Source: Cyanophora paradoxa CCMP329
Taxonomy: Eukaryota > Plantae > Glaucophyta
Direction of reading: 5' to 3'
DNA: 64,000 nucleotides
Assembly (NCBI GenBank): GCA_004431415.1
Contig: QPMI01000129.1
Span: 1-64,000 of the forward strand
This document shows, piece by piece, positions 37,001 to 61,000 of the stretch. Below the pieces are notes generated by a model. It searched no databases. It saw nothing but the letters and a program-made list of their open reading frames with translations, and was not told the origin of the DNA. The translations under genes and the position numbers were made by a program. Position 1 is the stretch's first letter, and every line of letters starts with the position of its first letter.

Positions 37001-39420
37001 TCCTCCTCGCGCCCCGCGAGGGCCTCGGGCAGCTGCAGCAGCACCGTCACCGGCAGCCCGGCGGCCCCGGCAGGGGCGGCGGCGGCGTCGGAGCAGGCGG
37101 CGCGGTGGAGGCGGCGGAGGAGGAGGGACTTGGAACAGCCGGCGGGGCCGTGCAGCAGCAGCGCCCGCTGCGGCGGGGGCGCGCTCGAGGGGCCGGGGCC
37201 GGGCGGAGGGCGCGGAGGAAGAGGTCGAGCTCGGCGGCGAGGTCGAGCCGCTCGGGGCGCCCCGCCTCGCGCCCCGCCGGCGGCACGTACGCCCTCCGCT
37301 CCCCCTCCAGCTCCTCCTCCGCCTCGTCCAGCGCCCGCAGCTCCCGCGCCGCGAACTGCGCCCCGCCTCAGAAGGGGCCGAGCGCGCAGGCGGCGGCCGC
37401 CAGAGCCGGCGCGGGCACCTCGGAGAGGATGGAGTCGAGGGGGCCGGCGACGGCGTCGGCGTCGGCGTCGCCCGGGCGCGGGGAGGCGGCCGCGGGGAGG
37501 GCGCCGAGGGCGCCCGCCCCGCACCCCGTCTCCGCCTCCGGGGCGGCCACCGCGCCCTGCCGGCACGTCGCGCAGTGCCCGAAGCGCGCCCGCAGCGACC
37601 GGCACTCCTCCGGCGTCCCCGGGGCGGCGCTTGGGTCGGGCGGGGCGGCGCTCGGCGTGCCTGGGGGCGTGCCCCGCGGCTCGGAGGCCGCGGAGGGTGC
37701 TCCTGGCACCTTCTCCGGGGCCTCTCGGGCGGGAGCTTCAGGCAGGGTGGGCGGCCTGCCGCCGCCGCAACCGGACTCCTCCTCGGACGGCTCGGAGGGG
37801 GCGGGCGGGGGCCGCGGCGGGTCCCCCGCGGCCCCCTCGGGGACAGCCCCCGGGGCGTGGGCGCCCGCTCGGGGTCCGAGCCCGAGCCCGAGGCCCCGCT
37901 GGCTTGGGGGCCCGCGGCGTCGCCCCGAGGCGGCCTGGCAGGCGCGCAGGGCGGGCCGGGGCCGGGGCCGGGGCCGGGGCCGGGGCCGGGCCGGGGCCGG
38001 GGCCGTGGCCAGGGGCACGTGGACAGGCCAGGGGCCGGCGAGGGGGCAGAGGAACGGAGACTCGGGTGGGAGGCCGAGCGGGAGCGGCGGCGGGCGGCGG
38101 CGGCGGCGGCGGCGAAGACGGAGGCCTCGACGGCGGGCCGCGGGCGGCGCGGGCTCCCCGTCGGCGTCGACGCGAGGCTCCCCGTCGGGGTCGAGGAGAG
38201 CGACTCGGCCAGCGAGGGGCGCCGCGCGAGGGGCCACCCCCGAGCCCCGCGTGCCCCGCCGCTGCCGCCGCTGCTAGCGGGCTCCGCGAGGCCTCGACGG
38301 GACTTGGAGGAGCGGCGGCGGCCCCGCCCCTCTCTGCGCGCGCGGGGCGCTTCGGCTCAGGAGCGCGGGGAGAGAGCCGCGGGGGCGAGACGAGCCCGGC
38401 CCGACCTGCGGGACCGTGGAAGTTCGCGGCGGGGGCGGGGGCGGGGATGAGAGGGGAGGGGGGTAGCGGGTCGCCGGCCTCCACGGCGAGGTCGCGGCGC
38501 CGGCGCCGGGCGGCAGCCCTCGCGCCTGCTGGCGCCGCAGCCTCCCCGTCGGGAGCGGGGCGGGGAGCTAGGCCGGCGGGGGCCTCCCGCGGGGGCGCGG
38601 GACCGGCGGCCCGGCGGAGGGCGCCGGCGATCGCAGTGGCGACGCAGGCCGCCGCCGCCGCCCGCCGCTCAGCTTCCGATTCCGACACGCCCGCCGCGGC
38701 TGCCTCGCCTGCGACCGGCGGCTCTCGCGGCGCGCCCGCGCTGGGGCCCGACAGGGCCTGCCGGCTGCAAAAGGAACCGCCACGCGCGGGCAGGGCGCCC
38801 GACGAGCCGCGGCTGCAGCTGGCGCCCGGGTCCGCCGGCTGAGGGTCCTTCAAGGGGGAGCGCCTGGCAGTGACACCATTCGTCGCTGCTGCGCGAGGGC
38901 GCCTCGCCACGTCGCATCCAGCTGCCGCCGCCCGCTTCGCTGCCGCTGCCGCCGTAGACCCCGCAGCGCGCTGCTCTGGTGCCGGCGGCGACCAGGCGCG
39001 CGGGGAGGCGGCGCCGGCCCCGCCGGAGGCCCCAACAGCGGCCGGCCTCGAGGGGGGCTGGCGCGCCCTGATCGTCGCCGCCACGGCCCCCTCGGGCCGG
39101 CGCGAGGCCCCAGCGGCTGCCGATCCCGCCGGTCGACTTCCGGTCTGCGCGGAAGGCAACACCAGAGGCGCGTCGTCCGGAGCGCTCGCGGGGGCTGGCG
39201 CTGCGGGGTAGGCTTCCACCGCTACCACGGCCCGCGGTCTCCCGCAGGATGAAGGCGTCGCCGGCGGCGCTCCGGCAGAGGCGTCTACAGGGCCGCCGAG
39301 TGCACGTGCCGGAGATCTAGACGGCGACCGGCACGCCGCCTCGACGGCCGCGGCGGCCACGTCGGAGGCGGCCGCCTCGATCTCGGCCTCGCGCTCCTTT
39401 GCAACCGCCGCCGAGGACAT
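34051..39420 (-). CDS. NLR-like STAND protein: low-complexity N-terminus, NACHT-like NTPase, pentapeptide repeats, WD40 repeats
   Basis: LLLHGPAGCSKS, LLLDAFDE, VACRSE, FALRPLQECLAA, AAANAISVLV, LRGADLRGCDLRGADL, then WD40 units (GHAGPV...LVSGGRDGTVRVWD; VVTGSWDKSARVWD); start uncertain. Confidence 0.8.
37953..38004 (+). repeat. (GGGGCC)n tandem tract, G-quadruplex-capable
   Basis: About 8 slightly imperfect GGGGCC units. Confidence 0.8.
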
Positions 39421-40618: not shown

Positions 40619-43600
40619 ATGATGGCGCCCCCACTCGAGTCCAGCAGCCACGGAGCGCGTGGCATCGCTGGCCTCGTCCGGGTGCTGAACAAGCGAGGGT
40701 CGAGCAACAAGCGGGCTTCCATCTGGTCAGGAGACGTGCGCGCCCCGCCCAAGGAGCTCGTAGCACAGGAGGAGGAGCCGTTGTTGCAGTGGGACGCGCC
40801 GCGCGAGGAATGGTGTGACGAGCGCGCTGCGCTGCCTGCGCATGCTCGTGGCCTTCCTGACGCGGTCTCAGGGAGGATGCGATGCGGCGGTTCATGCCGC
40901 AGCAGCGGGTGCTGTTTGCGCTGGGGCCGGGCAACGCGCTGCGGCGGGCGTGCATGCGGCTGTGCCTGTGGCGCGGCTTCTACCTGTTCTTCCTCTTCTG
41001 CACGCTGGCGAACTTCTGCACCATCGCCGCCCGGGACCCCGTCTGCGAGGCGCAGCTCGGCGCCCAGTGCTTTCGTGGCCGCCTCCTCGACGGTGCCCCG
41101 CCCGCCCGCCCGCCTGCCCACCCGCCCGGCCCGTGACGCCCCTGACAGGGTTTGAGCTCGCATTCACGGCCGTCTTCTCCTTCGAGGTCGTCGTGCAGGC
41201 GAGCTGGCCCCGCCCCGCTACCCCCCCCCTCCCCCCCCCCCCCCAAACCCCTACCCACCTCCAACTTCCCCGCCCCCTGCCTCAACGGGGTGCAGAGCAT
41301 CGCTCGCGGGCTCTTTGTGCCGGGTGGCTTCCTCCGCAGTGGCTGGGGCTACCTCGGTCCGCCACCCGCGTACCCCCCTCTCACCCCACCCCCCCGGAAC
41401 GGACGGGGCGGGCAGACGTGGCGGTGGTGGCGCTGGGGTGGCTCTCGCTGTCCCCCGAGGTGGGCTCCTTCGGCTCCATCCGCACCCTCCGCCTCTTCCG
41501 CGCCTTCCGCGGCCTCAAGCGCTATCTCCCCGCCATCCGCGTCCGCCCCCCTCCCCCCCCTGCACGCGGTACCCCCCCGCTCAGGCGGCGGGGCAGGTGC
41601 TGGCGCGGGCGATCGGGGCGGTGGCGCCGACGCTGGGCCACCTCTTCGTCCAGCTCGGCTTCTTCTTCGCCGTCTACGCCATCGCCGGCCTCCAGCTCTT
41701 CGAGGGCACCATGACGGCCCGCCCCCGGCCCCCCTGCGCCCCCCGGGGCCCCGCCCCCCGCCCGCCCGCCCCCTCTCACTCCGCCCCCAGAACCGCTGCG
41801 TGGACTCCCTCACGGGCTCCCTCCTTCCCACCTCCCCCGCCTGGCCCGGCGAGGACGTGCGCCCCTGTGGCTGTGCCCCCGCGGCCTTCTCCGGCGCTCA
41901 CGTCGCGCAGTCGTACCCGCGGCACATGTGCTCGCTGGAAGAGGACTCGGGCCGCCCCTGCGACCCGGGCTCCCGCTGCGCCGGCGGCTTCCCGGTGGGC
42001 CCACACCCCCCGCCCCTCCTTTACCCCTTGCCTCACCACGCCGCTTCCAGCTGCCCGTGGGGGGTACGGTCGGCTTCGACCACCTTGGCGTCGCGCTGAT
42101 GACCGTCTTCCAGGCCGTCACGGTACCCCTCCCCCTTCCCTCTCCTCCAACCCGCCCTCTTGACGCTTCCCGCCCCGCAGCTCTCGCAGTGGACCATGTA
42201 CAGTGCGCGGGCTCGGGAAGCGGGGGTGCGCAGCGGCGGCCCTTGACGCGTACCCCCCTCCCTTCCCGCAGTGTACTGGACGGCCCACGCGACGAACCAG
42301 GCCATCGCCTACTGCTACTTCATCTCCCTGTACCCCCCGCTCCCCTCCAAGGGACCCCTGCGCCTCCCCCGACGCCGGCCGGCAGGGTGCTGCTCGGGGC
42401 CTTCCTCATCCTGAACATGGCCATCGCCGCCATCACGACCAAGGCGCGAGCCGCCGCCCCCCCGGCGGGGCCCCGCGCGGCGCCCGCTGACCCCCGGCCG
42501 GCGCAGTACGACGAGATCGACCAGATCGAGGCGAAGGCGGCGCGGCACAACATCGGCGCCCAGATCGTCCTCCTCGTGCGCCGCGGCTTCTGGAAGAGCT
42601 ACCGGCCCCTCCGCGTCACCCGCAAGGCCTCGGCGGCGCTGGCGCGCTCTGTGGGGGGCCGGATCGCGGGGTCGCGCATCGGGCGGGCGACGACGGCGGT
42701 GTACGAGCGGTGGCGGGGCTCGGAGGCGCGGGAGCGGCTGCGGCGCTTCCTCGCCGCCCGCCGCGGCCTCGTCTACCTCGCCCTCGTCGGCAACTACTTC
42801 CACCTCGCCGGTGCGCACACAGGAATCGCCCCTCGTCCTCTGTCGCCCCCGGGGCTCCGCTGAGGGCCCGGCCCCCGCAGTGTACGAGGCGCCCGCCGGC
42901 CCGACCGCCGCCGCCATCCACCGCAGTGCGCCCTCCCCCTACCCCCAGCCCGGGCCCCGCCCCTGCGCCTCTCGGGGGCGAGCGGCTGGCGGGGCAGGCC
43001 TCTACTACTTCTTCACTGCGCTGCTGGGGGCGAGCGCGCTGGCGGACCTCGCGCTGCGCGGGGGCGACTACTTCGCCTCCCCCTGGAACCTCCTCGACCT
43101 CGCCGCCACCGCCTGGAGCCTCGCCGAGTGCGCCGCCGGCGTCCAGCAGCCCTACGGCAACGCGCTGCGCATCCCGCTGCTGCTCCGCCCCCTCGCCAAG
43201 CTCGACCCGACCCTCGCTGTCCTCGTCGAGAACGCCTGGCGCGCCGTCCGCGGCCTCCTCGGCTTCCTCCCCTTCTTCCTCGTCGCCATTCTCGTGCTTT
43301 CGGTGCTGGGTGCGGTGCCGCCCGCGCGCGCCGCCGCTGTCGGAGCGGGCTCACCCGCAGACGCGGCGGGGCAGGGGTGCAGCTGTTCGGGGGCGCGTGC
43401 GTGTGGGCGGCGGCGTGCGCGGGGCAGGCGGCGGCCGGGGAGCGGCCCCGGCGGGCGCACTTCGACGACCTCTTCAGCGCGTACCTCACCGTCTTCCGCG
43501 TCATCACCGCCGACTCCTGGAACGACGTGCGCCCCCGCACCGCCGCCCCGCCCGGCGCCGCCCCGCCCCGGTTGAGCCCCGCCCCGCCCCGTCGGCGGGG

Positions 43601-46600
43601 GCAGGTGCTGGCGGACAGCGTGCGGGCGACGGGGGCGTGGGCGATGCTCTACTTCCTCGCCGTCTTCTTCGTCGGCCTCTACGTCCTCCTCAACGTCTGG
43701 CAGACCGTGCGCCCCCCGCCCGCCTGCATGGCGCGCCGCCGTCGCCCCTCCGCTGCCTGCGCCGCCCTCCCTCACGTCGCCGGCGGCGCTCGCAGATCGT
43801 CATCATCAACATCTGCGACAACCTGCAGACGGCGGCGCGCGGGGGCGCCGAGCGCCAGCTGGACCCCGCCCGCGCCCTCGCCGAGTCCGACGAGGAGGAG
43901 GAGGGGGAGGGGGAGGGGGAGGGGGAGGGTAAGGGGGCCTACTCGGAGGCGGGGGCGTGGTCCGAGGGCGGCTCCCGCTCCGCCCCGGCCTCCAAGCCCG
44001 CCTCCAAGCTCGCCTCGCGAGCCGCCTCCTCGCCCGCGCTCCGCCTCAAGTCCCTCGAGGGGCCCCCTCTCCCCCCCGACGCCGCCACCGCATTCCCCGG
44101 CGCCATCGCCCCGGCCGAGCCGGCGGAAGAGGACGAGGATGCCGAACTGGCGCCCCCGGGCCCGCTGCTGATGGTGCCCCTCGGGCTCGCGGAGGCGCCC
44201 GGGGCGGCGTGGCCAGAGCGCTCCGAGGAGGACTCCTCCTCCTCGTCGGCCCTCCCGCGCTCCCTCGCCGCCCTCCCGGCCCCCTCCAGCCCCGGCGCAG
44301 CCCCCTCGCCCCGCCGCGTCCGTAGCGCCCTCCGCTCGGCGCGCGGCGCGGGGGCCGACGAGGCGGAGGCGCCCCGCTCGGTGCGCTCGGCCCGCGCCGT
44401 CTTCGTGGAGCGGCGGGGGCCCGACGAGGACGGGGAGCCGAGAGGGACTCCGCCTCCGCCTCGGACGAGGCCGCCGCCCCCGCCGCCCGCTCCTTCGTCC
44501 GCCCCGCCCGCCCCGCCCCGCCCCGCCCCGCCCGCCCCGCCCCGCCGGCGCCCTTCTGACGGCCGGCCGCCCGGGCACGCAGGCGATCCCCTCGGGGACG
44601 CACCTGCGGAAGGCGGGCGGGGCCGCCCGCCGCGGCTCCTCGACCTCGGCGAAGAGCGCGGGCGGGGCACCCTCGCGGCTGCGGCGCCTCATGGGGCACC
44701 GGCGCTCCTCGCAGGCGCTGCTCAGCTGGTGGGACGCGGCCGTCGCGCGCGCCAGCCTCCGCCTGGCGCCCTTCACGGGGCCGGGGTCGGCCTCGCTCTG
44801 CTGCCTGGGGCCGGGGAACGGGGCGCGGCGGGCGGCGGGGGCCCTCGTGGAGGGCCGCCCCTGGTTCGCCCTCGTCATGGCCGCCGTCCTCGCCAACGCC
44901 GCCGTCATGGGTACCCCCCCCCCCCCCCCCCTTGCCTCGCCCGCCCGCCCTCCTCACTCTTGGCAGGGGTGGAGGTCAGCATGCCGCCGGGGGAGCCGCA
45001 TCGGGCCCTCACCGCCCTCAACTCCGCCTTCACCCTCGTCTTCGCCCTCGACCTCGCCCTCAAGGCCCCCCCGCCCCGCCCCCTCCACGCCCCCCGCCGC
45101 CCCGGCCGAGGCCCCTCGCAGGTGGTGGCGCACGGGGCGGTGCTCGGGGAGGGGGCCTACCTGCGCTCGCCGGCGGCCTGGGTGGACGCCGCCGTCGTGG
45201 CGGCCTCGCTGGCCTCGCTGCAGGGGGAGATCCTGGCGCTGCCGCAGGACAAGGCGGCGCGCGCCGTCCGCGTCGCCCGCTCCCTCTCCCTCCTCCGCCT
45301 CTTCGCCCGCCTCCGCACCGCCCGCGCCCTCTGGGCCACCCTCACCGAGGGCGGCGGCGTCCTCCTCCGCGTCCTCCTCATCAACTGGCTCCTCTGGTCC
45401 GTCTTCGCCGTCGCCGCCGTCCGCCTCTTCGGCGGCGCCATGCACGTCTGCTCGTGCGCCCGCCCCGGCCCCCGCCCGCCCTCCCCCCTCGATGACGCGT
45501 GGCAGGGACGCGCGTGTGACGCACAAGGCGGCGTGCGCGGGGCTCGCGCTGGACCCCGAGACGGGGGCGGAGCGGGCGCTGGAGTGGCGCCCCGTCTTCT
45601 ACTGGCAGTCCCTCGACAACTACTTCTACGCCATGTTCCACCTGTCCGCCCCGCCCCGCTCCGAGTTGCCTCGCGCCGCTCAGAGCTGCCTCGCGCCAGG
45701 TACGAGGTGGCGGCGCTGGAGCAGTGGTCCCTCTACCGCGAGCACGGCGAGGAGTGCGCGCCCCTGCGCCCCTGCGCCCCGCCCCGCGCGGCGCTGGCTC
45801 GAGCGGGGGCGGGGCGGGGCAGCGCGACGGGGTGGGAGACGGCGCTGCGGGAGGGGGCGCGGCCCTCGGCGGCGCTCTTCTTCCACGTCTTCCTGTACGC
45901 CGGCCTCTTCTCCGGCTTCGCCATGATCATCGGCACGGGTGCGCCAGGCCCGCCCGCACTCCGGCCGCCGTCTGAGGCGGGGCGGCGGGCCGGGCCGGTC
46001 GCGGCAGTGGTGCACTTCTTCTCGCACGCGCGGAAGGCGGACGCGGAGGGGGCGCACGAGGCGGCGGGGGAGCTCCTCACAGGCCCCCAGAAGGAGCTCT
46101 ACGACATCCTCGCCCTCGGTGAGCGCGCAGCGGGGGTACAGGAAGAGGGGAGGGGCGAGTCTGACGCGGCGGCAGCGGTGAAGCAGCGGCTGCGGAAGAA
46201 GCAGCAGGCGCCGCGGGGGCGGCTGCGAGGGGCGCTGTACCGGGGGGTGCAGGGGGCGTGGTTCGAGGCCGGGGTGCAGCTGCTCGTGCTCGGGAACACG
46301 GCGCTGCTCGCCTCGCTGCACCACCCCCGCCCCCCGGCCCTCGACGCCGCTTTCGAGTCCGCCTCTTCCTCCCCTCCCCTCCGCCCCTCGAACGCGGGCG
46401 CAGGCAGGCGAACGTCTACTTCGCGCTGGCCTTCGGGGCGGAGATGCTGCTGAAGCTGGCGGCGCTGGGCCCCCGCGTGTACCTGGCGAGCGCGTGGGAG
46501 CGCTTCGACGGGGCGATCACGGTGCTGGGCCTCCTCGGCCTCCTCGCGACGGCCGTGCGGGTGCCCTTTGTCGGGACCAACGCCCTCCGCGTCCTCCGCC

Positions 46601-48698
46601 TCGCCCGCATCCTCGTCCGCGCCCCGCCTTCCCGGCCCCCCGCCCCGCGCCCGCGCGTGACGCCGGGGCAGCGCTTCGTGCGGCTCGCGCGCTTCGTGCG
46701 GGGCGTGCAGGTCCTCATGACCACCGTCGCCCACGTCCGCCCGCCCCGCGCGCCGCCCCGCCTCCGCCCGCCCCGACGCCGCCGCTGTGCCCGCGCAGTG
46801 CCTCCCCGCGCTCTGCTCCGTCGGCCTCCTCATCCTCCTCATCATCTACGTCTACGCCATCGTCGGCGTCTGGTCCGCCCCCCGCCCCCGCCCCCTCCCC
46901 CCCCATCCTCACGCCCCCGGCCTCGGCGCAGGCTCTTCCAGGGCGTGGCGCTGGAGGGCGCCGTGCAGCTCTCGGAGGACGCCAACTTCCGCTCCCTCCC
47001 GCGCGCCCTCGTCACCCTCTACCGCATGACCACCGGCGAGAACTGGAACTGGATCGTCCGCCCCGCTCCCCGCGCTCCGCCGCGCCCCGCTCGGGGGCGG
47101 CCCCGCCTGAGGGGGTCCGGGGGCAGATGTGGGACCACATGCGAGGCCCCGAGACGGGCTGCGTGCCGGGGTCGCCCTCGCGGGACTGCGGGACGACCTG
47201 GGCCGCCCCCCTCTACTTCTGCTCCTTCGTCCGCCCCCGCCCCCGGCCCCGCCCCCCGCCCCCCGAGCTTGCCCTGCGGGGCCGCCTCACGCGGGGGGCG
47301 CGGGGGCAGATGTTCGTGACGTACTTCGTGCTGAACCAGCTCTTCGTGGCGGTCGTCCTCGACGCCTTCGAGGACGTCGCCGCCCGCGCCGAGTACCGCG
47401 TCTCCGTCCGCCCCGCCCAGCCCCCGCCCCCGCCCCCTTGCCCCCGCCGCTTCCTGAGCGGCTGCCGGCGGCGCAGGAAGCGGACGTGGAGGCGTACGCG
47501 TGGACGTGGGAGCGGCAGGACCCCGCCGCCAGCGGCTTCGTCCACGTCGCCTCGGGCCTCCGCCCCGTCCTCCGCGCCATCGGCCTCCTCCACGCCGACG
47601 CCGCCTCGGCCGGCCCCGCCCCGCCCCTGCCCACCGCGCGCGGCCTCCAGAAGACGGCGCGGAGCCTGAGCCAGGCGGGGGGGCCCGGGCGGGCGCGGGG
47701 GTCGATGCTTGCGGCGCTGCGGGCGCTGGGGGAGGTGCCGGTGGCCGGCGGCCGCGTGCACTACTTCGACCTCATCAAGAGCCTTATCGTGCGGGCCTAC
47801 CGCGAGCACGGCGTCCTCCTCCCCCGCACAGCGAGCGCCGCCTCGAGCGCCTCGCCGCCGCCCGCTTCCCGGGGCTCGCCGAGCACCGCCGGCGCGCGGG
47901 GGCGCAGGCGGCGGCGCTCGGCGAGGCCGGCGAGGGCGGCGGCCTCGTCGTGGCGTACGCGGCGGCCCGGCTGCGCGCCGCCCTCGAGGGCAACGCGCAG
48001 CGCCGCCGCCTCCTGCGCGACGCCGCCGCCGCCCCCGCCGCCGACCGCATCCCGCCCTCCGCGCCCTCCGCCGCATCTGCGGCATCGCCCCGCCCCCGCC
48101 TCCGACCCCGCCCGTGGCCGATGCCGCGGCCGGATCCGGGGCCGAGGCCGGGACCGGGACCAGGGCCGGGCCGGGCGGGGCGGCGGCCGCCCTCGCGGGA
48201 GCTCGCGCGGCGGGCCCCGTCCGGGGCCTCCGGGGCGGCGGGGGCCCGGAGGCGGCGTTCCCGAGGCAGGGGAGGGGGCGGGGTGCGGGGCGTCCCCGCG
48301 GGGCCGGGGCCGGCGGGGCGGGGCAGGGGCGGTGCGGGCGGGCATCCTCCTCGGGGGCGACCTCGAGTTCGACGACCTGGAGGCCCGCCCCCCGCCCCGC
48401 CCCCGCGAGCGCGAGCGCTGAGGGAGGCGGCGGGGCGCAGACAACAGTGCTCAAGGAGGCGCCGGGCGCGAGCTCCCGCCCCAGCAGCGACGACGAGGCG
48501 GACGCGGGGAGCTCGAAGGGGGCGGGGCCCAAGGGCGGGGAGGGGGCCGGGGCCCCGGGGCGCGCGCCGGCCGCCGCGGGGCGCCCCGAGCTCTTCGCGG
48601 TGCCCGTGGCGGTGGCGGAGCGGGCGGCCCCCGTGCAGGAGGAGGCGCCCCTCCCCGGCGCCGTCTTCGAGGCCGGCGTCGCCCTCACCCGCTTCTGA
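40619..48698 (+). CDS. Complete four-domain (4x6TM) voltage-gated-like cation channel (Cav/NALCN/Cch1 superfamily)
   Basis: Four repeats with S4 (IRTLRLFRAFRGLKR; LRIPLLLRPL; ARAVRVARSLSLLR; LRVLRLARILRFVR) and pore loops (VFQAVT|LSQW; VFRVITADSW; LYEVAALEQW; LYRMTTGENW); S6 LFVAVVLDAF; EF-like WERQDPAASGFV and VHYFDLI. Confidence 0.92.
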
Positions 48699-49099: not shown

Positions 49100-49469
49100 T
49101 TTCTCGGGAGAAGAGCCTTGAATCTCGTCGTATTGTAGCACTCAGCGTGCTTCGCTTTGTAGCACTCGCTCCAGCTTGCGCCTAGTCCTGCGCCGCAGGA
49201 CGCGCAGCATGGCCCCGGCGACAAGACCACGGCACGTCCCGGCAGATCAAGGCCGACGCGCACCTTCCAGAAGCCCTTCTCGAGCTTGCCGGCGGTCTGC
49301 TCGAAGTCGGCGGTCATGGCGGCGCCCTGAGCGACTCCTGCAGCGCGGCTCGGCACGGAGTGGGAGGCGCGCTCCATGCGCTGCCGAGACACACCTGCAG
49401 AGGCAGATCCTCCAGCGAGTCATAGGTGCTCAGGTTGAGCTCCCCCCAGCCCTCGTCGTCCGTCTTCAT
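49100..49469 (-). pseudogene. Truncated, frameshifted copy of the 5' end of the coiled-coil gene at 58005
   Basis: MKTDDEGWGELNLSTYD nearly identical to 58005. Exon 2 has a 1-nt deletion and a 6-nt insertion giving TGA at 49316-49314. Degenerate remnant AKHAECYN versus AKHGEYYD. Confidence 0.8.
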
Positions 49470-49690
49470 GGCGGCCAGTTGGCGCGGACCGTACCGCGGT
49501 GAGCTCGGTCTCTTCCTACTGACTTCCGCTCGCTCGGCAGGCCTGCATTTGCGCTGACGATTCGAAGAGCCAATAGACACGGATACGCTATTCTTTTGAT
49601 GCGAAGTTAGCTGGAAGCATCCAGCGGTCAGGCCGATGCGGTAGCACGCACAGCGGCTTCGGTAGCCTGTACAGGCATCACACAGCGCAT

Positions 49691-52600
49691 ATGGGGCCCG
49701 GGCGCGCGGGGTCGCTCCTGGCGCTCCTGGCGCTGCTAGCGACCGCTTCCGGCGCCCCATCCAAGTACCAGTGGTGCGGCCATGCCCTCTATCACGCACC
49801 AGGATCGCTCCGCGGCGAGCCCCGCGCAGGCGAGTCGACGTAGCGGACCCCGCAAACCCGAGCTCGCCGGCGCCCGCCGTGGTGCCTGGAGCGGACTACC
49901 TCCTTGTTGTTCGCGTTGCCGACGAGGCGAGCTGCGCCCGCCCGATCCGCGCGGCGAAGCTGAGCGCGCAGTAGACGGGGGCGGCGGACGCCGAGACGAC
50001 GCGAGAGCTTTCGGCGCTGGGCCTGAAGCCGCGCTTCTTCTACCAGTACGAAGCTAGTATCGAGGGGAGCTCGCTGAACACAAGCTGGGAGGCCGGTGCG
50101 GGCCCGCGGCGGTTCGGGCGCGGTGCAGCGCGGCACGGGGCTGACCCGCCCCGGGCAGCGTACCAGCCGCCGAGCGAGGAGTGGCGGGTGCCGTTTCGGA
50201 CGGGCGAGGCCGGCATCGCGCAGCTCACTGTCTTGAGCAATCACGTCGGGGCCTTCGGCGTCTACGTCCGCGCCTCCCCTCGCGCCGCGCGCGCACCGCC
50301 GCCTCACGCGCCGCGTAGCTGCCGGACAAAGTCGTGTCGTTTGCGGTGAGCCCGTTCCAGGCGCGCGTCGGCCCCGGGCAGTACCGGGTGCGCCCCGCCC
50401 CGCCCCGCCTGCCTTCCCGCGCCGGGCTCGCCGCGCGGGGCCGACGGGCGGGGGCAGTCGCTGGTGGGGGCGGAGTCGGCGGGGTACGAGGGGGGCGGGT
50501 CGTACCGGCTGCCGGGGCCGGTGCTGCAGCCGGACCTGGTGCCCGGGGTCTCGCCGGTGGGCCTCGTGCTCTTCGACGGGGGCGCGGGGGCCCTCCTCGC
50601 CTCCGCCTCGGAGTTCCGCGACTCCGTCTTCCTCGCCCCCGACCTCGCCCGCTTCGCCGCCGAGCCGCCCGCCTGCCCCGACCTCCCCGCCGCCTCTCTC
50701 CAGGGCGCCCTCGCCCTCGCCAACCGCCTCCTCCTCTCCACCCGCTACGGCCTCGTCCAGGCCGCCGCGCCGGCCTCGGGCCCCGGCGCGGGCCCCCGCG
50801 AGCTCGTCTGGAGCATCGCCCTGCGCCAGTGCGTCGCCGTCCTCTCCAACCCCGCCCAGGTCCGCCCCCGCCCCGCCCGCCCCGCCCCGCCCGCCGGCCC
50901 GCGCCGGGCGAGCGGGGCGCGCGGGCGCAGTACAACGCGTTCCGGACGGCGTTCAACGACCACCAGTTCGCGCTGACGGCGCCGCCCGAGGCGCGCGTCT
51001 TCGTCTCCTTCCCGGCGAGGAGGCTTCTCCGAGCTCCAGGCCCGCCCGCCGCCCCGCCGGAGCCCGCGCCGCCGCGGCGCGACGCGGGGCGCAGGGCTGG
51101 GCGCTGGGGCTGTCGGCGGCGACGGCGCGGCCGGTGGCGATGACGGCGAGCCTGGCGGAGCCGGGGCTGCTGCAGCTGCTGGTGGAGGCGGGGCGGGCGG
51201 GGCGCTGGGGAGCGGCGGGCGGTACGCGCTGCGCACGTACAATGTCAGCGGGCGCGCCTGGGCCGCCGCCTTCGAGTTCCCCGCCGCCATCCCCGACGGT
51301 GCGCGCCCCGCGGGCCCCGAGGGAGCGCGGGGCGGGCCGAGCGGCGGCAGACTCCTCGACGGGGACGCGCGTGGTGCACGTGCCGGCGACGGCGCCGCCC
51401 GGCGGCGTCGCCCTCGAGCTCTCCGGCCTCCAGGCGCGCCCCGGCCCGCCCGGCCGCCCCGCCGCCGCCGCCGCTGACGGGGCGGCAGTTCGCGCGCGCC
51501 GTCTCGCGGGACCTCTTCGCGACGGGCAACGCGCTCCTCTACTCGTGCGGCCCCGCGGCGCGCGCCGGCGGCGGGGCGCTGAGGCGGCGCAGGGCGTCGG
51601 GCGGGCGCTCGTGGGTGGTGCTGCGCGTCTTCGCGCCGCGGCGGGTGGCGCAGCTCGAGACCTCCTCGGCCGGCACCTATGCGCTCCTCCTCGACAACGC
51701 CGAGGCCCGCCCCGCCGCACGACCCGGGCCCGGCGCCGGCGCCGGCGCTGAGGGGCGGCAGGCGTGGTACGGGGTGGCGGGGACGGCGACGCTGGTGCAG
51801 CTGAGCGGGGCGCGGGCGGATCCGGCGGCGGCGGGCTTCGGGGCGGCGCGGGCGCTGCTCTTCGACCTCTCGTCGGCGCTCTTCGAGCTGACGCTGGCGG
51901 TGGGGCCCGGCGGGGCGCTGGCGGCGCAGCGGGCGGACCCGTACACGGCGAAGCTGGAGGAGCTGATGGCGCTGGAGGCGCTGCAGCGCGGCGAGGCGTG
52001 CCCCGTCTCCGCCGTCGCGGTCGCCGCCTCCCACAGCTCCCTCTACACGCGCCAGCCGGACGAGGAGCCCGTCGGCCTCCCCGCCGGCCTCTTCCTCGAC
52101 CGCGGCGCCTCCTACTCCTTCGCCCTCTCCCTCAACGCCTCGGAGGAGTACTGGCGGCAGCGGGAGGCGGGGCGGGCGGCCCTCCTGCAGGAGCCGGCCC
52201 TCCTCCTCCAGGTCGGCCGCACCGACCTCGTCTCCGTCACGCTGGAGCCGCTGCCCCACGACGGCTCCCCCATCTTCTCCTACCTCGCCACTGTCAACGA
52301 TCTTTCCGCGTACCCTGCGATGTCACCCCCGGGGGAGCGCCTGGAGGTGACGCCCGTGCGGCTGCTCGTCGCCGGGGCGGCGGGGGCGTGCGCGGGGGCC
52401 GTGGCGGCGCGCTACGAGACGGAGGTGCACACGGGCTGCCCGCCCGGCCGCCGCCTCGTATTCGATCCGCTCGCCTCCGGCACGGCGATCATCTGCTCCG
52501 AGAAGGCCCGCCCCGCATCCGTCCCCTTTCCCGCCCGCGCCTCTGACTCTGTTGCGTTCAGTTCGGCGTCCCGTGCTTCAAGATGGCCGACGGCGCGCGC

Positions 52601-53656
52601 GCCCTGCTGCCTTCGCTTCTGTACACGCGCCTTGACTCTGCGGCGCAGACTTCCTGCCGGTGTTCAACCTGACGGACACCGTCGCCAACACGACCGGCGT
52701 CTACCGCGGTGCGCCCCGCCGCCGTGCCCCGCCGGCCCCGCCCTCACGCTCCGCCCCGCCCCGTGCGCAGGGCGCTTCTTCCTGGAGGCGGTGGCGGCAG
52801 GCGAGACGCCCTCCTCCCTGCGCCGCTTCACCGAGGAGGAGGTGCGCGCGAGGCGAGCCCCGCGCCGGCGGCGCCGGCGGCTCGAGCGGGGGCGGCGGGG
52901 CGCAGATTACGCGCTTCAACCACGGCAAGGCCCTGACCTTCGTCCCGATCGACGACGTGGCGGTCGTCGAGGACGGCGGCGTCGAGAAGAGCGTCTACAC
53001 GCGCTCCACGAACACCATCCAGTGCGCCCGCCCTTGCGGGCTCCTCCTAGGCCGTGGTGCGGGGCTGGGGCGAGCGGGGCGGGGGCGGCGGCAGGTGGGT
53101 CTGCGCCCCCGGCAACCCCTGCGAGATCGTCTTCCCCAAGGGCGGGGAGCCCCCCGAGGTGCACCCCCGCCCCGCCCCCGCCGGCCGCCCCCGGCCCCGC
53201 GCGCCCCTGCCGGCCGACGCCGGCGGCAGCTCTACCTCGAGCTGCGGGCCACGACCATCCCCGAGCGCGCCTCCTACTGCAACCACACCGCCCGCTTCAC
53301 CGTCCGCCCCGCTCCCCCGCTCGCAACGCCGCCCCCGCCCTCCCCTCACGCGCCCCACCGCAGGTCCTCCTCACCGGCATCTCGATGGACGCCACGACCA
53401 CCTACATCAGCGTGCGCCGCCCCGCCCCGCCCCGCGCCCCGCGCGCCGCGCCCGACGCGGGCCGCGGCCGCAGGTCGGAGTCACGATCGGCTTCCTCGTC
53501 TTCCTCGTCTGCGTCTCCGCTCTCGTCCACCGCTTCCGCCACCCCGAGGCACGCCGCCCCGCCCGCCTCGTTCCGACCCGCGCGCCCACGCGCCCGCCCG
53601 CGCCGCAGTTTTTCGGCTACGAGCCACGCGCCGGGGCCCGCCCTCACGAAGAGTAG
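49691..53656 (+). CDS. CATSPERG: CatSper auxiliary subunit gamma-like protein, copy A (signal peptide, large ectodomain, single C-terminal TM; ~20 exons; apparent frameshifts near 51010-51190)
   Basis: GCPPGRRLVFD...PCFKMADDFLPVFNLTDTVANTTGVYRGRFFLEAVAAGETPSSLRRFTEEEITRFN...WVCAPGNPC...PE...SYCNHTARFTVLLTGI then TM; matches the CatSper-gamma C-terminal domain as I recall it. Confidence 0.8.
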
Positions 53657-53814
53657 CCCAACCGGTCGAATCTAGGTCTTCAGTGTTACAGATTTTATTG
53701 AATATACAAGGCTCTCTGTTCTGAATACTTAGGCTTTTCAAGTTTAGCTTTAAGTAAGGTACTACGGTATTCCATGTACACAATCAGCCAGGACGTGGAG
53801 GCAGGGGGACCAGG

Positions 53815-56800
53815 CTAGTCCTCGTGCGGGCGCGCGCTGTCTCGCGGCTCGTAGCCAAAGAACTGCGGCGCGGGGGGGCGCGTGGGCGCGCGGGTCGGGG
53901 CGAGGCGGGCGGGGCGGCGGGCCTCGGGGTGGCGGAAGCGGTGGATCAGAGCTGTGAGGAGTACGAGGAAGACGAGGAAGCCGATCGTGACTCCGACCTG
54001 CGGCCGCGGCCCGCATCGTGCGCGGCGCGCGGGGCGCGGGGCGGGGCGGGGCGGCGCACGCTGATGTAGGTGGTCGTGGCGTCCATCGAGATGCCCGTGA
54101 GGAGGACCTGTGGCGGGGCGTGAGGGGAAGGCGGGGGCGGCCTTGCGAGCGGGGGAGCGGGGCGGACGGTGAAGTAAGCGGTGTGGTTGCAGTAGGAGCC
54201 GCGCTCGGGGATGGTCGTCACGCGGATCCTGAAGAGCATCTGGGGCGGGGCGGGGCGTCGGGCGGGGCCGGCGCAGCGCGGGGTGCACGCGCCTGGGGCG
54301 GCTCGAAGTTGTGGGGGAGGACCTTCTCGCAGGGGCTCCCGGGGGCGCACACCCACCTGGCGGCCCCCCGCTCAGCGCGCCGACGGGGCGGGACGAGCTC
54401 GTCTCCTCTCCGGCGGGGGCGAGCGCACTGGAGGCTGGCGGCGGCGCGGGTGTAGACGCTCTTCTCGACGCCGCCCTCCACGGCGGTGGTCACGTCGTCG
54501 AGGGGGATGAACGCCAGCGCCGCCCCGTAGTTCACCCGCAGCACCTGCCGGCCGCCCTCTCTCGCTCCCGGCCCCTCGCCGCCCCCGCCCCCGGGGGTCC
54601 CCCCCCGCACCTCCTCCTCGGTGAAGGGGCGGAGGTCGGCCGGCGTCTCCCCGGCCCCCACGGCCTCCAGGAAGTACCGCCCTACCGCCCCCGCGTCACG
54701 CAGACTCACGCTAGGTCACCCCGCACGGGTCTGCGGGGGCGGGGCGCGGCGCGGCGCACCGCGGTACACGTCGGTCGTGTTGGCGACGGTGTCCGTCAGG
54801 TTGAACACGGGCACGAAGTCTGATCGCACGGAGGCGTCAGGGCGAGCGTGCAGGAGGGAAGGCAGCAACGCGCGCGCGCCATCGGCCATCTTAAAGCACG
54901 GGACGCCGAACTGAACGAAACAGAGTCAAAGGCCTGAGCGGGAAAGGGGACGGATGCGGGGCGGGCCTTCTCGGAGCAGATGTTCCCCGTGCCGGAGGCG
55001 AGCGGGTCGAAGACGAGGTGGCGGCCGGGGGGGCACCCCGTGTGCACGACGGTCTCGTAGACGGGGGCCGGGGCGCCCCCCGTGCAAGCCCCCGCCGTCC
55101 CGCCCACGAGCAGCCGCACGGGGGTGACCTCCAGGCGCTCCCCGGGCGGGCCCATCGCCGACGCCGACGAGAGGTCCGAAACAGTGGCGAGGTAGGAGAA
55201 GATGGGGGAGCCGTCGTGGGGCAGCGGCTCCAGCGTGACGGAGACGAGGTCGGTGCGGCCGACCTGGAGGAGGAGGGCCGGCTCCTGCAGGAGGGCCGCC
55301 CGCCCCGCCTCCCGCTGTCGCCAGTACTCCTCCGAGGCGTTGAGGGAGAGGGCGAAGGAGTAGGAGGCGCCGCGGTCGAGGAAGAGGCCGGCGGGGAGGC
55401 CCACCGGCTCCTCGTCCGGCTGGCGCGTGTAGAGGGAGCTGTGGGAGGCGGCGACCGCGACGGCGGAGACGGGGCACGCCTCGCCGCGCTGCAGCGCCTC
55501 CAGCGCCATCAGCTCCTCCAGCTTCGCCGTGTACGGGTCCGCCCGCTGCGCCGCCAGCGCCCCGCCGGGCCCCACCGCCAGCGTCAGCTCGAAGAGCGCC
55601 GACGAGAGGTCGAAGAGCAGCGCCCGCGCCGCCCCGAAGCCCGCCGCCGCCGGATCCGCCCGCGCCCCGCTCAGCTGCACCAGCGTCGCCGTCCCCGCCA
55701 CCCCGTACCACGCCTGCCGCCCCCTCAGCGCCGGCGCCGGCCGGGCGCGGGTCGTGCGGCGGGGCGGGCCTCGGCGTTGTCGAGGAGGAGGGCGTAGGTG
55801 CCCGCCGAGGAGGTCTCGAGCTGCGCCACCCGCCGCGGCGCGAAGACGCGCAGCACCACCCACGAGCGCCCGCCCGACGCCCTGCGCCGCCTCAGCGCCC
55901 CGCCGCCGGCGCGCGCCGCGGGGCCGCACGAGTAGAGGAGCGCGTTGCCCGTCGCGAAGAGGTCCCGCGAGACGGCGCGCGCGAACTGCCGCCCCGTCAG
56001 CGGCGGCGGCGGCGGGGCGGGCCGGGGCGCGCCTGGAGGCCCGAGAGCTCGAGGGCGACGCCGCCGGGCGGCGCCGTCGCCGGCACGTGCACCACGCGCG
56101 TCCCCGTCGACGAGTCTGCCGCCGCTCGGCCCCGCCCCCGGGCTCCGTCGGGGGCGGGCGGGGGCGCGCACCGTCGGGGATGGCGGCGGGAACTCGAAGG
56201 CGGCGGCCCAGGCGCGCCCGCTGACATTGTACGTGCGCAGCGCGTACCGCCCGCCGCTCCCCAGCGCCCCGCCCGCCCCCGCCTCCACCAGCAGCTGCAG
56301 CAGCCCCGGCTCCGCCAGGCTCGCCGTCATCGCCACCGGCCGCGCCGTCGCCGCCGACAGCCCCAGCGCCCAGCCCTGCGCCCCGCGTCGCGCCCCGGCG
56401 GCGCCGGCTCCGGCGGGGCGGCGGGGCGGGCCTGGAGCTCGGAGAAGCCCTCCTCGCCAGGGAAGGAGACGAAGACGCGCGCCTCGGGCGGCGCCGTCAG
56501 CGCGAACTGGTGGTCGTTGAACGCCGTCCGGAACGCGTTGTACTGCGCCCCGCGCGCCCCGCTCGGCCGGCGCGGGGCCGGCGGGCGGGGCCGGCCGGCG
56601 GGCGGGGGCGGACCTGGGCGGGGTTGGAGAGGACGGCGACGCACTGGCGGAGGGCGATGCTCCAGACGAGCTCGCGGGGGCCCGCCGCGGGGCCCGAGGG
56701 CGGCGCGGCCGCCTGGACGAGGCCGTAGCGGGTGGAGAGGAGGAGGCGGTTGGCGAGGGCGAGGGCGCCCTGGAGAGAGGCGGCGGGGAGGTCGGGGCAG

Positions 56801-57783
56801 GCGGGCGGCTCGGCGGCGAAGCGGGCGAGGTCGGGGGCGAGGAAGACGGAGTCGCGGAACTCCGAGGCGGAGGCGAGGAGGGCCCCCGCGCCCCCGTCGA
56901 AGAGCACGAGGCCCACCGGCGAGACCCCGGACACCAGGTCCGGCTGCAGCACCGGCCCCGGCAGCCGGTACGACCCGCCCCCCTCGTACCCCGCCGACTC
57001 CGCCCCCACCAGCGACTGCCCCCGCCCGTCGGCCCCGCGCGGCGAGCCCGGCGCGGGAAGGCGGGCGGGGCGGGGCGGGGCGCACCCGGTACTGCCCGGG
57101 GCCGACGCGCGCCTGGAACGGGCTCACCGCGAACGACACGACTTTGTCCGGCAGCTGCGCGGCGCGTGAGGCGGCGGGGCGCGCGCGGCGCGGGGGGGAG
57201 GCGCGGACGTAGACGCCGAAAGTCCCGACGTGGTTGCTCAAGACAGTGAGCTGCGCGATGCCGGCCTCGCCCGTCCGAAACGGCACCCTCCACTCCTCGC
57301 TCGGCGGCTGATACGCTGCCCGGGGCGGGTCAGCCCCGCGCAGAGCAGCGTCACGTCCAGAATGCCCTTATCCCGCACCGGCCTCCCAGCTCGAGTTTAA
57401 CGAGCTCCCCTCGATACTAGCTTCGTACTGGTAGAAGAAGCGCGGCTTCAGGCCCAGCGCCGAGAGCTCTCGCGTCGCCTCAACGTCCGCCGCCCCCGTC
57501 TACTGCGCGCTCAGCTTCGCCGCGCGTATCGGGCGGGCGCAGCTCGCCTCGTCAGCCACGTGAACAACGAGGAGATAGTCCGCTCCAGGCACCACGGCGG
57601 GCGCCGGCGAGCTCGGGTTTGCGGGGTCCGCTACGTCGACTCGCCTGCGCGGGGCTCGCCGCGGAGCGATCCTGGTGCGTGACAGAGGGCATGGCCGCAC
57701 CACTGGTACTTGGACGGGGCGCCGGCAGCCGTCGCTAGCAGCGCCAGGAGCGCCAGGAGCGACCCCGCGCGCCCGGGCCGCAT
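53815..57783 (-). CDS. CATSPERG: CatSper auxiliary subunit gamma-like protein, copy B (apparent 1-nt frameshift near 56190)
   Basis: MRPGRAGSLLALLALLATAAG signal peptide; GCPPGRHLVFD, PCFKMADDFVPVF, PFTEEEVLRVN, WVCAPGSPC, SYCNHTAYF, TM VGVTIGFLVFLVLLTALI. Confidence 0.8.
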
Positions 57784-58004
57784 GAGCGCTGTGTGATGCC
57801 TTTACAGGCTATCGAAGCCGCTGTGCGTGCTACCGCATCGGCCTGACCGCTGGATGCTTCCAGCTAACTTCGCCTCTTAAGAATAGCGTACCCAGATCTC
57901 GAAACGCTCCCCAAAGCCAGAGCATATGCAGGCCTGCCGAGCGAGCGGAAGTCAGTAGGAAGAGCCCGAGCTCACCGAGGTACGGTCCGCGCCAACTGGC
58001 CGCC
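57784..58004. promoter_or_regulatory. Probable bidirectional promoter, duplicated at 49470-49690
   Basis: About 220 bp, lower GC, between divergent ATGs at 57783 (-) and 58005 (+); conserved in the other arm. Confidence 0.55.
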
Positions 58005-61000
58005 ATGAAGACGGACGACGAGGGCTGGGGGGAGCTTAACCTGAGCACCTATGACCCGCTGGAGGATCTGCCTCTGCAGGTGTGTCTCGGCAGCGCATGG
58101 AGCGCGCCTCCCGCTTCGCGCCGAGCCGCGCTGCAGGAGTCGCTCCAGGGCGCCGCCGCCGACTTCGAGCAGACCGCCGGCAAGCTCGAGAAGGGCTTCT
58201 GGAAGGTGCGCGTCGGCCTTTGTCTTCCTGGACGTGCCGGGTCTCGTCGCCGGGGCCATGCTGCGCGGAGCCCTGGGCCCGTTAGCTATCCTTAGCTAGC
58301 GAGTGCCTGGGCCGGCGGCGCCATGCAAGACGCAAGGGCGTAGTTACAGCAGTCCGACGGGCGGCGGGGCGCAGGATGTGGAGGGGACGCTCACGGAGAA
58401 CCTGAAGGAGTGGACGAAGGTCTCGGGCATGCCGCGCGGCTCCGCCTTCGTCCTCAAGCAGCAGGCCCGCCGCCCCTCACGCTCCGCCGCGCCACGCATG
58501 CGCAGTAGCGCCGCTGAGCCGCGCCCGCAGCACCAAAAGCTCGAGCAAGTCGTCCTTGAGAACCTCTCGCGGAAGGAGGACACCGAGAAGGCGTTCGCTG
58601 GGAAGGCGCTCTCTCCTCGGCCGGAGCCGCCGGGGCGGCCGTCGCGCTGAGCGGGGGCGGGGCGGCAGATCCTGGAGATCGCGACGCTGGCGCTGAAGCG
58701 GATGCTGGAGGCGAAGCACGGGGAGTACTACGACAAGCTGACCTTCCTCAAGCGCCAGTACGAGATCCGCATCGAGCGCGCGCGCGAGGCGTCCCGCCGC
58801 GAGGCCCGGGCGACGGCCCTGCACCACGGCGAGCGGGCGGCGCGGGCGGCGCGGGCGCGCGAGGAGGAGCTCGCCGCCGAGATCGCGCGCCTGAAGGAGG
58901 AGGCCGGGCGCGCCTCCGAGCAGGCCGGCGAGCGCTTCCGGGCGGCGCTGGGGGCGAAGCAGGGGGAGGTGCAGCGGCTGCAGGAGGAGGTCCGGCGGCG
59001 CGACCGCGACCGGGACGGCGAGCGCGCCGCCGCCGAGGAGGCCGTCGAGCGGGCCAACGCGCGCACCCGCGCCGCGCAGGCGGCGCAGGCCAAGGCCGAG
59101 GAGGCGGCCAGGGCGGCCGAGGAGCAGGCAGCGCGGGAGCGGGCGCGCGCGGAGGCGGCGGAGCGGGCGGCCAAGGGCAAGGCGGACGAGCTGATGGAGT
59201 CGACGATGCGGCTCGGGGCGGGGGAGAAGGCGGCTCGGGACGCGCTCGCGCAGGCGCAGGCGCGGGCGGAGCATCTGCAGCGCGAGCTCGCGCAGGCGCG
59301 CAGCGGCGGCGCCAGCAGCGGCCTCGAGCAGCAGCTGCGCACCGCCCTCAAGGAGAAGGCCGAGGCCGCCAAGGAGCGGGACGCCGCCGGCAAGGAGCGC
59401 GCGGCCGCCCTCGAGCAGGCCGCCGCCGCCAGGCGCGAGGCGGAGAAGCACAAGGGCGAGGCGGAGAAGCAGAGGGCCGAGGCGGAGAAGAGCAAGGGGG
59501 AGGTGGCGCAGGCGCGCGCGGAGGCGGAGCGGCAGCGGGCGGAGGCGGAGAGGCAGCGAGCGGAGGCGGAGCGGCTGCGGCTCGAGGTGGAGAAGCACCG
59601 CACGGACTCGGCCTCCCTCCGGTGAGCGCGCGCGAAGGCCGCGCGGGGCCCGCCCGAAGCTCACCCGGGCTCTGCCTCCGGCGCGCAGGAAGGAGCTGGC
59701 CGTCGCGGAGGCCTCGGCCGCGACCGCCGCCTCCGCCGCCGTCGCCGCCGCCGCGCACGCGCGGCGCGCCTCGGCCGCGAGCCCGCCGCCGGCCTCGGGC
59801 GGCTCCCGGCGCCCCTCGGGCTCGGGCATGGGCTCCATGGGCGGCGGCGGCGGCGGCGGCGGCGGGCCCCGGCATCGCGCGGGGCGGGCGGCGTGGCGCG
59901 CACGCCCTCTCGCCAGCGGCTGGCCGCCGCCTCGCCGCCGGGCACGCCGCCCCTCGCCTCCCCGAGCACTCAGACGCCGAGTCCCCTGGCCCCGCCCCGG
60001 CCCCTCCTCCTCCTCCCTGCCCCCTCGCCCCGCCCCGCCCCCGCCCCGTCGCCTCCGCCGCCGACGAGCCGGCCTTCTTCCCCCCGGCGCCCGTCCCCCG
60101 GCCGTCGTCCCGTCCCCTCCCCCACCCTCGTCCTCCGCCCGACGCCCCTCCCGCCCCGGCCCCGCCCCGACGCCGCGGTCCAGACCGACCCCCTCCCCCT
60201 CCCCGCCGTCCTCCCCCACCGCAGGCCGCCGCCCTCCCCCTGCCTGCCCCAGCGCGGCCGCCCCGCCGTGCGCCGCCGCCGCGCGTCGAGTCGCTGAGCG
60301 TGGAGGAGGAGGCGCTGCGGGGGGCGCTGGAGGGGCCCTGGAGGGCGGCCCCGGCGCCGCCGAGGCGGCCGCCGAAGCCCTCGCGGAGGCCCTGGCGGGC
60401 CTCTCGCCGGCCGCCCGTGCCGCGGCGCTCCCCGCCGCCTGGGAGCGGCTGCGCGAAGAGGCGCTCGGGCGGGGCCGGAGGAGGCGCCGGTGCACGTCGC
60501 GCGGCTCCTCGCGTGGGGCGACGCCACCCGCCGCTTCGGGTTCGAGGCGGGGAGGGGAGGGAGGCGGGGCGCCCCCCGAGCGGCCCCCCGGCGGCGGCGG
60601 CCTCGGCGAGGAGGCCCGGGCGCAGGTCGCCGCGCTGGAGGACAAGGCCCGCCCCCTCGCGGCCCCCGCGCCCCTGCGCCGGCCGGCCCCGCTGACTCAC
60701 ACCCCGCCGACCCCCGCCCGCCCTCCACAGGTCGCCGAGCTGCAGCGGCGGCTGGCAGAGGCCGCCGACGGCGCCGGCTCGACGGACGCAGCGAGCTCGC
60801 CACCGCAGTGCGCTCCACCCGCGCCTCCTCCCGCCCCGCGCTCACCCGCATGCGTGCGGGCGCCCGGCGCGCAGGGTGCCGGCGCAGCAGCAGCAGGAGG
60901 CGCGTGCTGCGAGCCGGCCAGGGAGCGCGGGCGGGCAGGGGCGGCCGGGGAGCGGGGAGGCGGGGCGCGGGCGCGGGGGCAGCAGGGGCAGGGCGGGAGG

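Follow-up and report, generated by a model that had tools for sequence, protein, structure and literature searches.

A tail-to-tail pair of CatSper-gamma genes, near-identical over the beta-propeller and divergent in the stem

Locus and gene models

The DNA considered here is a window of 64,000 nucleotides (the whole stretch analysed; contig QPMI01000129.1), and its subject is a pair of genes for CatSper-gamma, a subunit of the flagellar CatSper Ca2+ channel. The host is almost certainly the biflagellate glaucophyte alga Cyanophora paradoxa, which supports the non-animal flagellate proposed in a preliminary description of the locus. The window has a GC content of 63-84% and many introns of 47-78 nt, and C. 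paradoxa's PacBio assembly is reported to have 67.6% GC, short introns, probable haploidy and frequently overlapping untranslated regions (UTRs) (PMC6704402).

A self-BLAST of the window returned one inverted duplication, with arms 90.2% identical over 4.5 kb and separated by a spacer of 154 nt (Table 1). Each arm holds 21 colinear exons with introns of 47-78 nt, GT or GC donors and AG acceptors, and the two stop codons converge, so that the tail-to-tail arrangement first described is borne out. The frame-intact proteins of copies A and B are 924 and 925 residues long. Both begin with a signal peptide (judged by eye) and have a single strong hydrophobic segment at 877-904, near the C terminus, which is modelled as a helix and followed by a tail of about 20 residues; the preliminary outline of a roughly 900-residue single-pass protein with a short tail was therefore accurate. 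Its series of sequence motifs is also present in the order given, except that PFTEEE is found in B only (A has R before FTEEE) and that four residues, not three, separate SYCN from the following F.

The duplicated block reaches about 490 bp upstream of both start codons and takes in exons 1 and 2 of a coiled-coil gene. Because this gene continues beside arm B but ends at 49201 beside arm A, arm B occupies the original position and arm A is derived. Copy A arose by local inverted duplication of copy B together with their shared upstream region.

Both deposited gene models (g1590 and g1591) carry probable assembly errors. The model of A (P0001) follows the exon set of A including the assembly indels, which leaves about 45 residues out of frame, while that of B (P0002) omits exon 9, a detour round an assembly indel. 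Whole-protein searches and folds were run on the deposited proteins, and the spliced models were searched exon by exon.

Table 1. Features of the duplicated locus, in window coordinates.
Feature	Position	Strand	Remarks
Arm A (derived copy)	49201-53658	+	Self-BLAST; has the cut-off piece of the gene that is intact beside arm B
Truncated first two exons of coiled-coil gene	49201-49490	-	Partner starts near 57997-58006 (+), head-to-head with copy B; co-duplicated with the shared upstream region
CatSper-gamma copy A, 21 exons	49691-53656	+	Start codon at 49691, stop codon 53654-53656; deposited model P0001 = EukProt tig00000498_g1590.t1
Copy A exons	49691-49773, 49830-49926, 49975-50095, 50159-50265, 50319-50387, 50458-50859, 50931-51039, 51095-51298, 51351-51433, 51489-51544, 51593-51704, 51762-52505, 52562-52592, 52649-52708, 52771-52841, 52906-53021, 53095-53158, 53230-53301, 53364-53411, 53474-53548, 53609-53656	+	
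Homogenised tract in A	50319-52290	+	Covers the beta-propeller, the linker and the Ig-like domain up to two thirds of its length; mirrored in B at about 57154-55185
Three 1-nt homopolymer deletions, A exons 7-8	51014-51190	+	~51015, ~51023, ~51190; net -3, ~45 residues out of frame
Divergence peak in A	52291-53301	+	End of the Ig-like domain and stem; 55/206 residues differ
Spacer between the two stop codons	53657-53814	.	AT-rich; 3' UTR region common to both convergent genes, probably overlapping
Arm B (parental position)	53813-58267	-	Self-BLAST; neighbour gene upstream runs past the duplicated block
CatSper-gamma copy B, 21 exons	53815-57783	-	Start codon at 57783, stop codon 53815-53817; deposited model P0002 = EukProt tig00000498_g1591.t1
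Copy B exons	57783-57701, 57644-57548, 57499-57379, 57315-57209, 57154-57086, 57015-56614, 56542-56432, 56375-56172, 56115-56033, 55985-55930, 55881-55770, 55713-54967, 54910-54880, 54819-54760, 54681-54611, 54544-54429, 54356-54293, 54239-54168, 54107-54060, 53997-53923, 53862-53815	-	Exon 18 start (54239) set from RNA-type contigs
One 1-nt homopolymer deletion, B exon 8	56187-56191	-	~56190; Illumina contig has an extra G behind 56187

CatSper-gamma identity

Both copies encode CatSper-gamma, comprising an N-terminal domain, a beta-propeller, an immunoglobulin (Ig)-like domain, a stem and a transmembrane helix. The two proteins match CATSPERG_C (PF22846) with 67.7 and 68.0 bits against a cut-off of 27.6 (E 1e-18 for both), and exon 12 alone gives a borderline match to the CATSPERG Ig-like family PF22851 (27.4 bits for A and 27.0 for B, cut-off 27). 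Pfam's own models of the N-terminal domain and propeller match neither protein; exons 2-4, 6, 8, 10 and 11 line up in order on an outgroup gamma profile, which places an N-terminal domain and beta-propeller ahead of the Ig-like domain. The open reading frame (ORF) pieces gave no Pfam match, whereas matches came from exon 12, read in its correct frame, and from the deposited proteins; on their own, the short stem exons fall below the size that Pfam needs. Neither copy matched the CATSPERB domains in Pfam, or the CATSPERD/E family PF22850 at E values up to 1.

Comparison with the other canopy subunits pointed the same way. A phmmer search of solved structures returned gamma chains only (mouse gamma, E 4e-25), and a profile of 119 relatives found gamma at 6e-172, beta at 4e-12 and delta at 5e-8. 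The model of A (predicted local distance difference test score, pLDDT, 79.9; predicted template modelling score, pTM, 0.77) had chain F of PDB 7EEB as its best Foldseek match, with a template modelling (TM) score of 0.67 versus 0.44-0.48 for the other three canopy chains. Its superposition on that chain aligned 805 residues over 25-902 (Z 27.4, root mean square deviation 4.8), ahead of beta at Z 22.1. The C-terminal part of B, modelled with a pLDDT of 92, gave a TM score of 0.75 to mouse gamma (root mean square deviation 3.7) versus 0.42-0.47 for the other canopy chains. A feature search placed a beta cluster (0.94) ahead of gamma (0.93) at low recognition, and was not discriminating. The gamma assignment of the preliminary description is upheld by these profile and structural matches, which stand well ahead of those to beta, delta and epsilon.

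The algal proteins have the signal peptide, N-terminal domain, beta-propeller, Ig-like domain, stem and single transmembrane helix of mouse gamma 2 (PDB 7EEB chain F and 9UBW chain F). They differ from it in being about 200 residues shorter and only 15-24% identical, in their short cytoplasmic tail, and in being two expressed copies of a photosynthetic unicell. A gamma pair, Catsperg1 and Catsperg2, also exists in the mouse. In the mouse channel the four canopy subunits meet via their Ig-like domains and each transmembrane helix rests against S2 of a single pore subunit (10.1101/2024.11.18.624146). If these roles hold in the alga, the N-terminal domain, propeller and Ig-like domain would form part of a canopy roof over a four-subunit flagellar Ca2+ pore, and the stem and transmembrane helix a pole beside one pore subunit. 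Mouse gamma propellers also join neighbouring channels into rows (PMC12799140, PMC9205950), the gamma-gamma contact of the zigzag row using a propeller loop with Cys282, and the stem of mouse epsilon binds SLCO6C1. Compared without residue-level mapping of loops, the algal propeller shows two family-conserved cysteines and no evident extra one for a gamma-gamma disulfide.

Evidence for two expressed copies

The two copies are also recovered from independent sequencing runs. A DNA contig built from short reads spans 53479-53992, across the junction of the arms, the divergent parts are covered by separate A-specific and B-specific contigs in both DNA and RNA-type runs, and more than 90% of sampled words are present in 14 DNA runs. 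RNA-type contigs from three runs in three studies end exactly on the predicted splice sites of both copies (in A, at exon ends 52505, 53021, 53301 and 53609); exons 16 and 18 of A lie in one such contig, and exons 16 and 18 of B in another. The RNA label of these runs is an automatic guess, backed by the splicing. Paralogue-specific transcripts, suggested earlier as a check, were thus seen spliced for both copies, and the bridging and copy-specific contigs contradict a single real copy, the outcome that the preliminary description had named as a refutation. One further RNA-type contig, on 53607-53862, covers both last exons and the spacer and departs from the genome at both last-exon acceptors; the convergent 3' UTRs therefore probably overlap.

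The four homopolymer indels in the assembly, three in A and one in B, are probably assembly errors, though short of proof. An Illumina contig over 56000-56565 carries the additional base listed for B exon 8 and a G at 56459, which together give an open frame at all four indel sites, and the G at 56459 occurs in neither assembled arm. The outgroup gamma profile follows the frame of B in the first half of exon 8, and in the model of P0001 the out-of-frame stretch, 299-369, is the only long region of low confidence. The in-frame alleles are not assignable to A or B because contigs merge near-identical copies.

Mosaic divergence and gene conversion

Divergence between the two copies is distributed as a mosaic. 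Only 3 of the 517 residues encoded by the homogenised tract differ, and by domain the amino-acid difference is 4.3% in the signal peptide and N-terminal domain, 0.8% in the propeller, 0% in the first part of the Ig-like domain, 25.5% at its end, 26.4% in the stem and 13.7% in the transmembrane helix and tail. Fourfold sites follow the same division, with 9/380 (2.4%) different in the tract versus 33/97 (34%) in the peak (Fisher p 1e-17), as do introns, with 14/396 (3.5%) versus 70/286 (24%; p 1e-16). As the introns show an equal pattern, protein constraint cannot explain the mosaic. No permutation reached the observed clustering of differences. The peak starts abruptly inside exon 12, at an edge without an indel; its largest indels (12-16 nt) are intronic, and the sequence flanking it on either side is more alike than the peak itself. 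Parts of the arms are about 99% identical, while in the peak they differ by about 25%. A small unconverted patch is also found in intron 3 (50096-50158, mirrored at 57316-57378), which is 27% different between the arms where neighbouring introns are 2-6% different.

Silent and intron divergence that is low outside and high inside one region is the pattern by which converted duplicates with a divergence peak are recognised. Repeated gene conversion between the arms, which keeps the roof nearly identical, is strongly supported. Fourfold sites saturate here at about 52% because third positions are almost all G or C, and the unconverted silent sites are about two-thirds saturated (corrected silent distance about 0.6-0.7). 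The simplest account would be an old duplication with recent conversion over the roof-coding part, and so an old duplicate with two different poles on one roof. Contig alleles at 55318, 55402 and 55405 in the near-identical tract were not read as strain-specific conversion, since bubbles of this kind are merged in contigs.

Although no domain of the gamma family is better conserved than the stem, none is more divergent between A and B. Relative to silent differences, replacement differences are more frequent in stem exons 15-18 than in the remaining unconverted parts (p 0.0005). No conserved cysteine is lost from either stem, each retains 77 of 105 conserved columns, they score alike against the outgroup profile (179 and 167 bits), and both fold well; derived changes are present in both copies, and the differences fall mostly in variable columns. 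The ratio of nonsynonymous to synonymous rates (dN/dS) in the peak is about 0.35, a fourfold-site estimate that allows for near-pure G/C third positions; a value near 0.9 for exons 16-18 was rejected as inflated by a third-position GC content of 0.99.

Relatives and prior knowledge

In a quick tree, whose compositional bias and long branches limit its use to the A+B pair, the two copies are sisters with support of 100, on tips of 0.09 and 0.05 and a stem of 1.03. The duplication is therefore specific to this lineage. The nearest named match, from Rhodelphis limneticus, is 32% identical; the nearest environmental match (L001; 52% GC, 36% identical) is too distant to polarise changes, and no fragment from a close relative was found with the B stem as query.

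Gamma is ancient (PMC5362262), and homologues were found in Rhodelphis, Pigoraptor, Chromosphaera, many chytrids and blastoclads, Paratrimastix, Aduncisulcus, Tritrichomonas and animals. Those of Rhodelphis limneticus (P0003), Tritrichomonas foetus (P0045), Paratrimastix (P0046), Aduncisulcus (P0047) and a Nonionella transcriptome (P0013, possibly a contaminant) extend the range beyond the lineages usually cited. That CatSper occurs in glaucophytes has already been stated (PMC10120453; 10.1101/2020.08.17.240366), and with homologues in metamonads, fungi and Rhodelphis among others, the preliminary statement that they are known in only a few non-animal flagellates understated their range. The pair is a real feature with a correct family call; it is less surprising than first held, and what is added is the stem-confined divergence. 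Cai, Wang and Clapham reportedly described non-animal CatSper complexes in glaucophytes, apusozoans, stramenopiles and basal fungi in 2014. We found no report of the duplicated Cyanophora gamma or its mosaic in the searchable literature, which did not extend to the contents of that 2014 paper.

Two gamma genes per genome also occur in Allomyces macrogynus (AMAG_15935 and AMAG_06763), where 791 of 910 aligned positions are common to both. They lie on different contigs, presumably as a result of polyploidy, whereas the Cyanophora copies are adjacent, inverted and carry a conversion mosaic. A further likeness is exon 5 of the red and green opsins (Teshima and Innan 2008, reviewed in PMC3924837), where neighbouring duplicates are likewise homogenised save around one functional region; the Cyanophora peak differs in being about 1 kb wide, with 55 residues, and in being known from the sequence of one locus.

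Two proposed gamma isoforms and rival explanations

We hold, tentatively, that the likeliest reading of the sequence is a pair of alternative gamma isoforms maintained by selection. After local inverted duplication of B, repeated conversion would have homogenised the roof, while selection would have protected two different segments, each an Ig end and stem, from being overwritten. With one isoform or the other in the gamma slot, there would be two CatSper variants; these may differ in contacts near the membrane and at the centre of the canopy, and perhaps pair with different paralogues of the pore subunits. By analogy with mouse, the two algal gammas would have the roof and row-forming surface in common and differ at the canopy centre and pole. 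Two channel variants, as the preliminary description proposed, would agree with the divergence pattern. While gene structure, family, expression and the mosaic were observed, we infer channel assembly, location and isoform function. Where duplicates undergo conversion, a peak of divergence has been described as marking selection for two functions (PMC3924837).

Several points weigh against this reading. Established divergence by itself blocks conversion (PMC3924837), the dN/dS of the peak means that positive selection is not shown, and the patch in intron 3 indicates that non-coding sequence also escapes conversion. No relative was found close enough to date the duplication, and contigs cannot place the in-frame alleles on one copy or the other. 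The assembly was also Illumina-corrected by majority rule at 95% similarity (PMC6704402), which may have inflated the identity of the tract; such correction acts solely on reads already 95% alike, however, and independent contigs also collapse the tract. A close rival, and a real possibility, is that the copies are functional but redundant, serving dosage or backup. Their 3' part would have drifted by chance past the similarity needed for conversion, which ceases once substitutions build up (PMC3924837), and then come under ordinary purifying selection, with stem differences of no functional effect. A dN/dS of this size, differences chiefly in variable columns, derived changes in both copies and a silent divergent patch in intron 3 are all as such neutral escape would have it. 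What favours selected isoforms over redundancy is the enrichment of replacement changes in the stem exons, the contrast between conservation of the stem in the family and its divergence here, and the greater likeness of both flanks of the peak.

Filling of two canopy positions, the other proposal of the preliminary description, finds little in its favour, as A and B are each an ordinary gamma whose duplication falls late on the gamma tree. In its specific form, both gammas would sit in one canopy, the second across from the first, where mammals have delta, so that a repeated subunit was split into two slot-specific ones. Beta, gamma and epsilon did precede delta in evolution (PMC5362262), the ring order gamma-beta-delta-epsilon sets delta opposite gamma (10.1101/2024.11.18.624146), and divergence is restricted to slot-facing domains. 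We nonetheless consider this unlikely: the Ig-like and stem parts of delta resemble epsilon rather than gamma, the CATSPERD/E profile matches neither copy, most other flagellates examined yielded one gamma-like representative, and the N-terminal half of the transmembrane helix is identical in A and B. It is quite improbable, too, that one copy is a decaying, still transcribed pseudogene with real frameshifts. The assembly does have -1 in B exon 8 (which, if real, would bring a stop in exon 12) and -2/-1 in A, and B has Ser at position 188, in a column that is 91% Pro; yet each of the four indels is the loss of one base from a homopolymer in a PacBio assembly, and the independent contig is in frame at every site, including the state at 56459 absent from both assembled arms. 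Beyond these sites the 920 codons hold neither stops nor frameshifts, the splice sites are intact, dN/dS stays under 1 throughout, and three RNA-type runs show splicing of both copies. A fold-back chimera or two haplotypes might also be suspected, since the long-read assembly has a long inverted repeat that is about 99% identical in part. This reading is already largely refuted and very improbable, given arms that differ by 10% overall and about 25% in the peak, the short-read contig that bridges the junction, copy-specific contigs in DNA and RNA-type runs, the recovery of most words in the 14 DNA runs and a genome reported as probably haploid (PMC6704402).

Heterologous expression of CatSper is not possible (PMC5362262). 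A culturable alga that expresses two gamma isoforms, with a difference almost confined to the Ig end and stem, would amount to a natural domain swap, pinpointing some 55 residues with a possible part in partner choice or gating, and the occupant of the fourth canopy slot in the absence of delta becomes testable. If the second gamma did occupy the delta slot, the conversion-resistant residues would mark slot-specific contacts and the locus would record the splitting of a subunit. If divergence was instead neutral, the pair is a converted duplicate of the ordinary sort, and what it yields in practice is a corrected model of each gene.

Neighbouring genes

The coiled-coil gene that runs from 57997 onward (+) is placed head-to-head with copy B, some 200 bp away from the start codon of B; the ORF at 58702-59622 has no Pfam match. 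Directly upstream of arm A, at about 40700-48698 (+), lies a gene for a four-domain voltage-gated (Cav/Nav-like) channel (Ion_trans E 1e-15 and 0.002), with filter positions that read by eye as roughly S/D/E/E. It was considered as a CatSper alpha subunit and rejected, being four-domain. A scan of the window for bacterial promoters and terminators was discarded as meaningless for a eukaryotic host. The ORF at 35980-37605 (-) has weak AAA_16/NACHT-like matches, under curated cut-offs, and that at 6958-8994 (-) has Kelch-repeat matches and an alanine-rich, repetitive, coiled-coil-like stretch.

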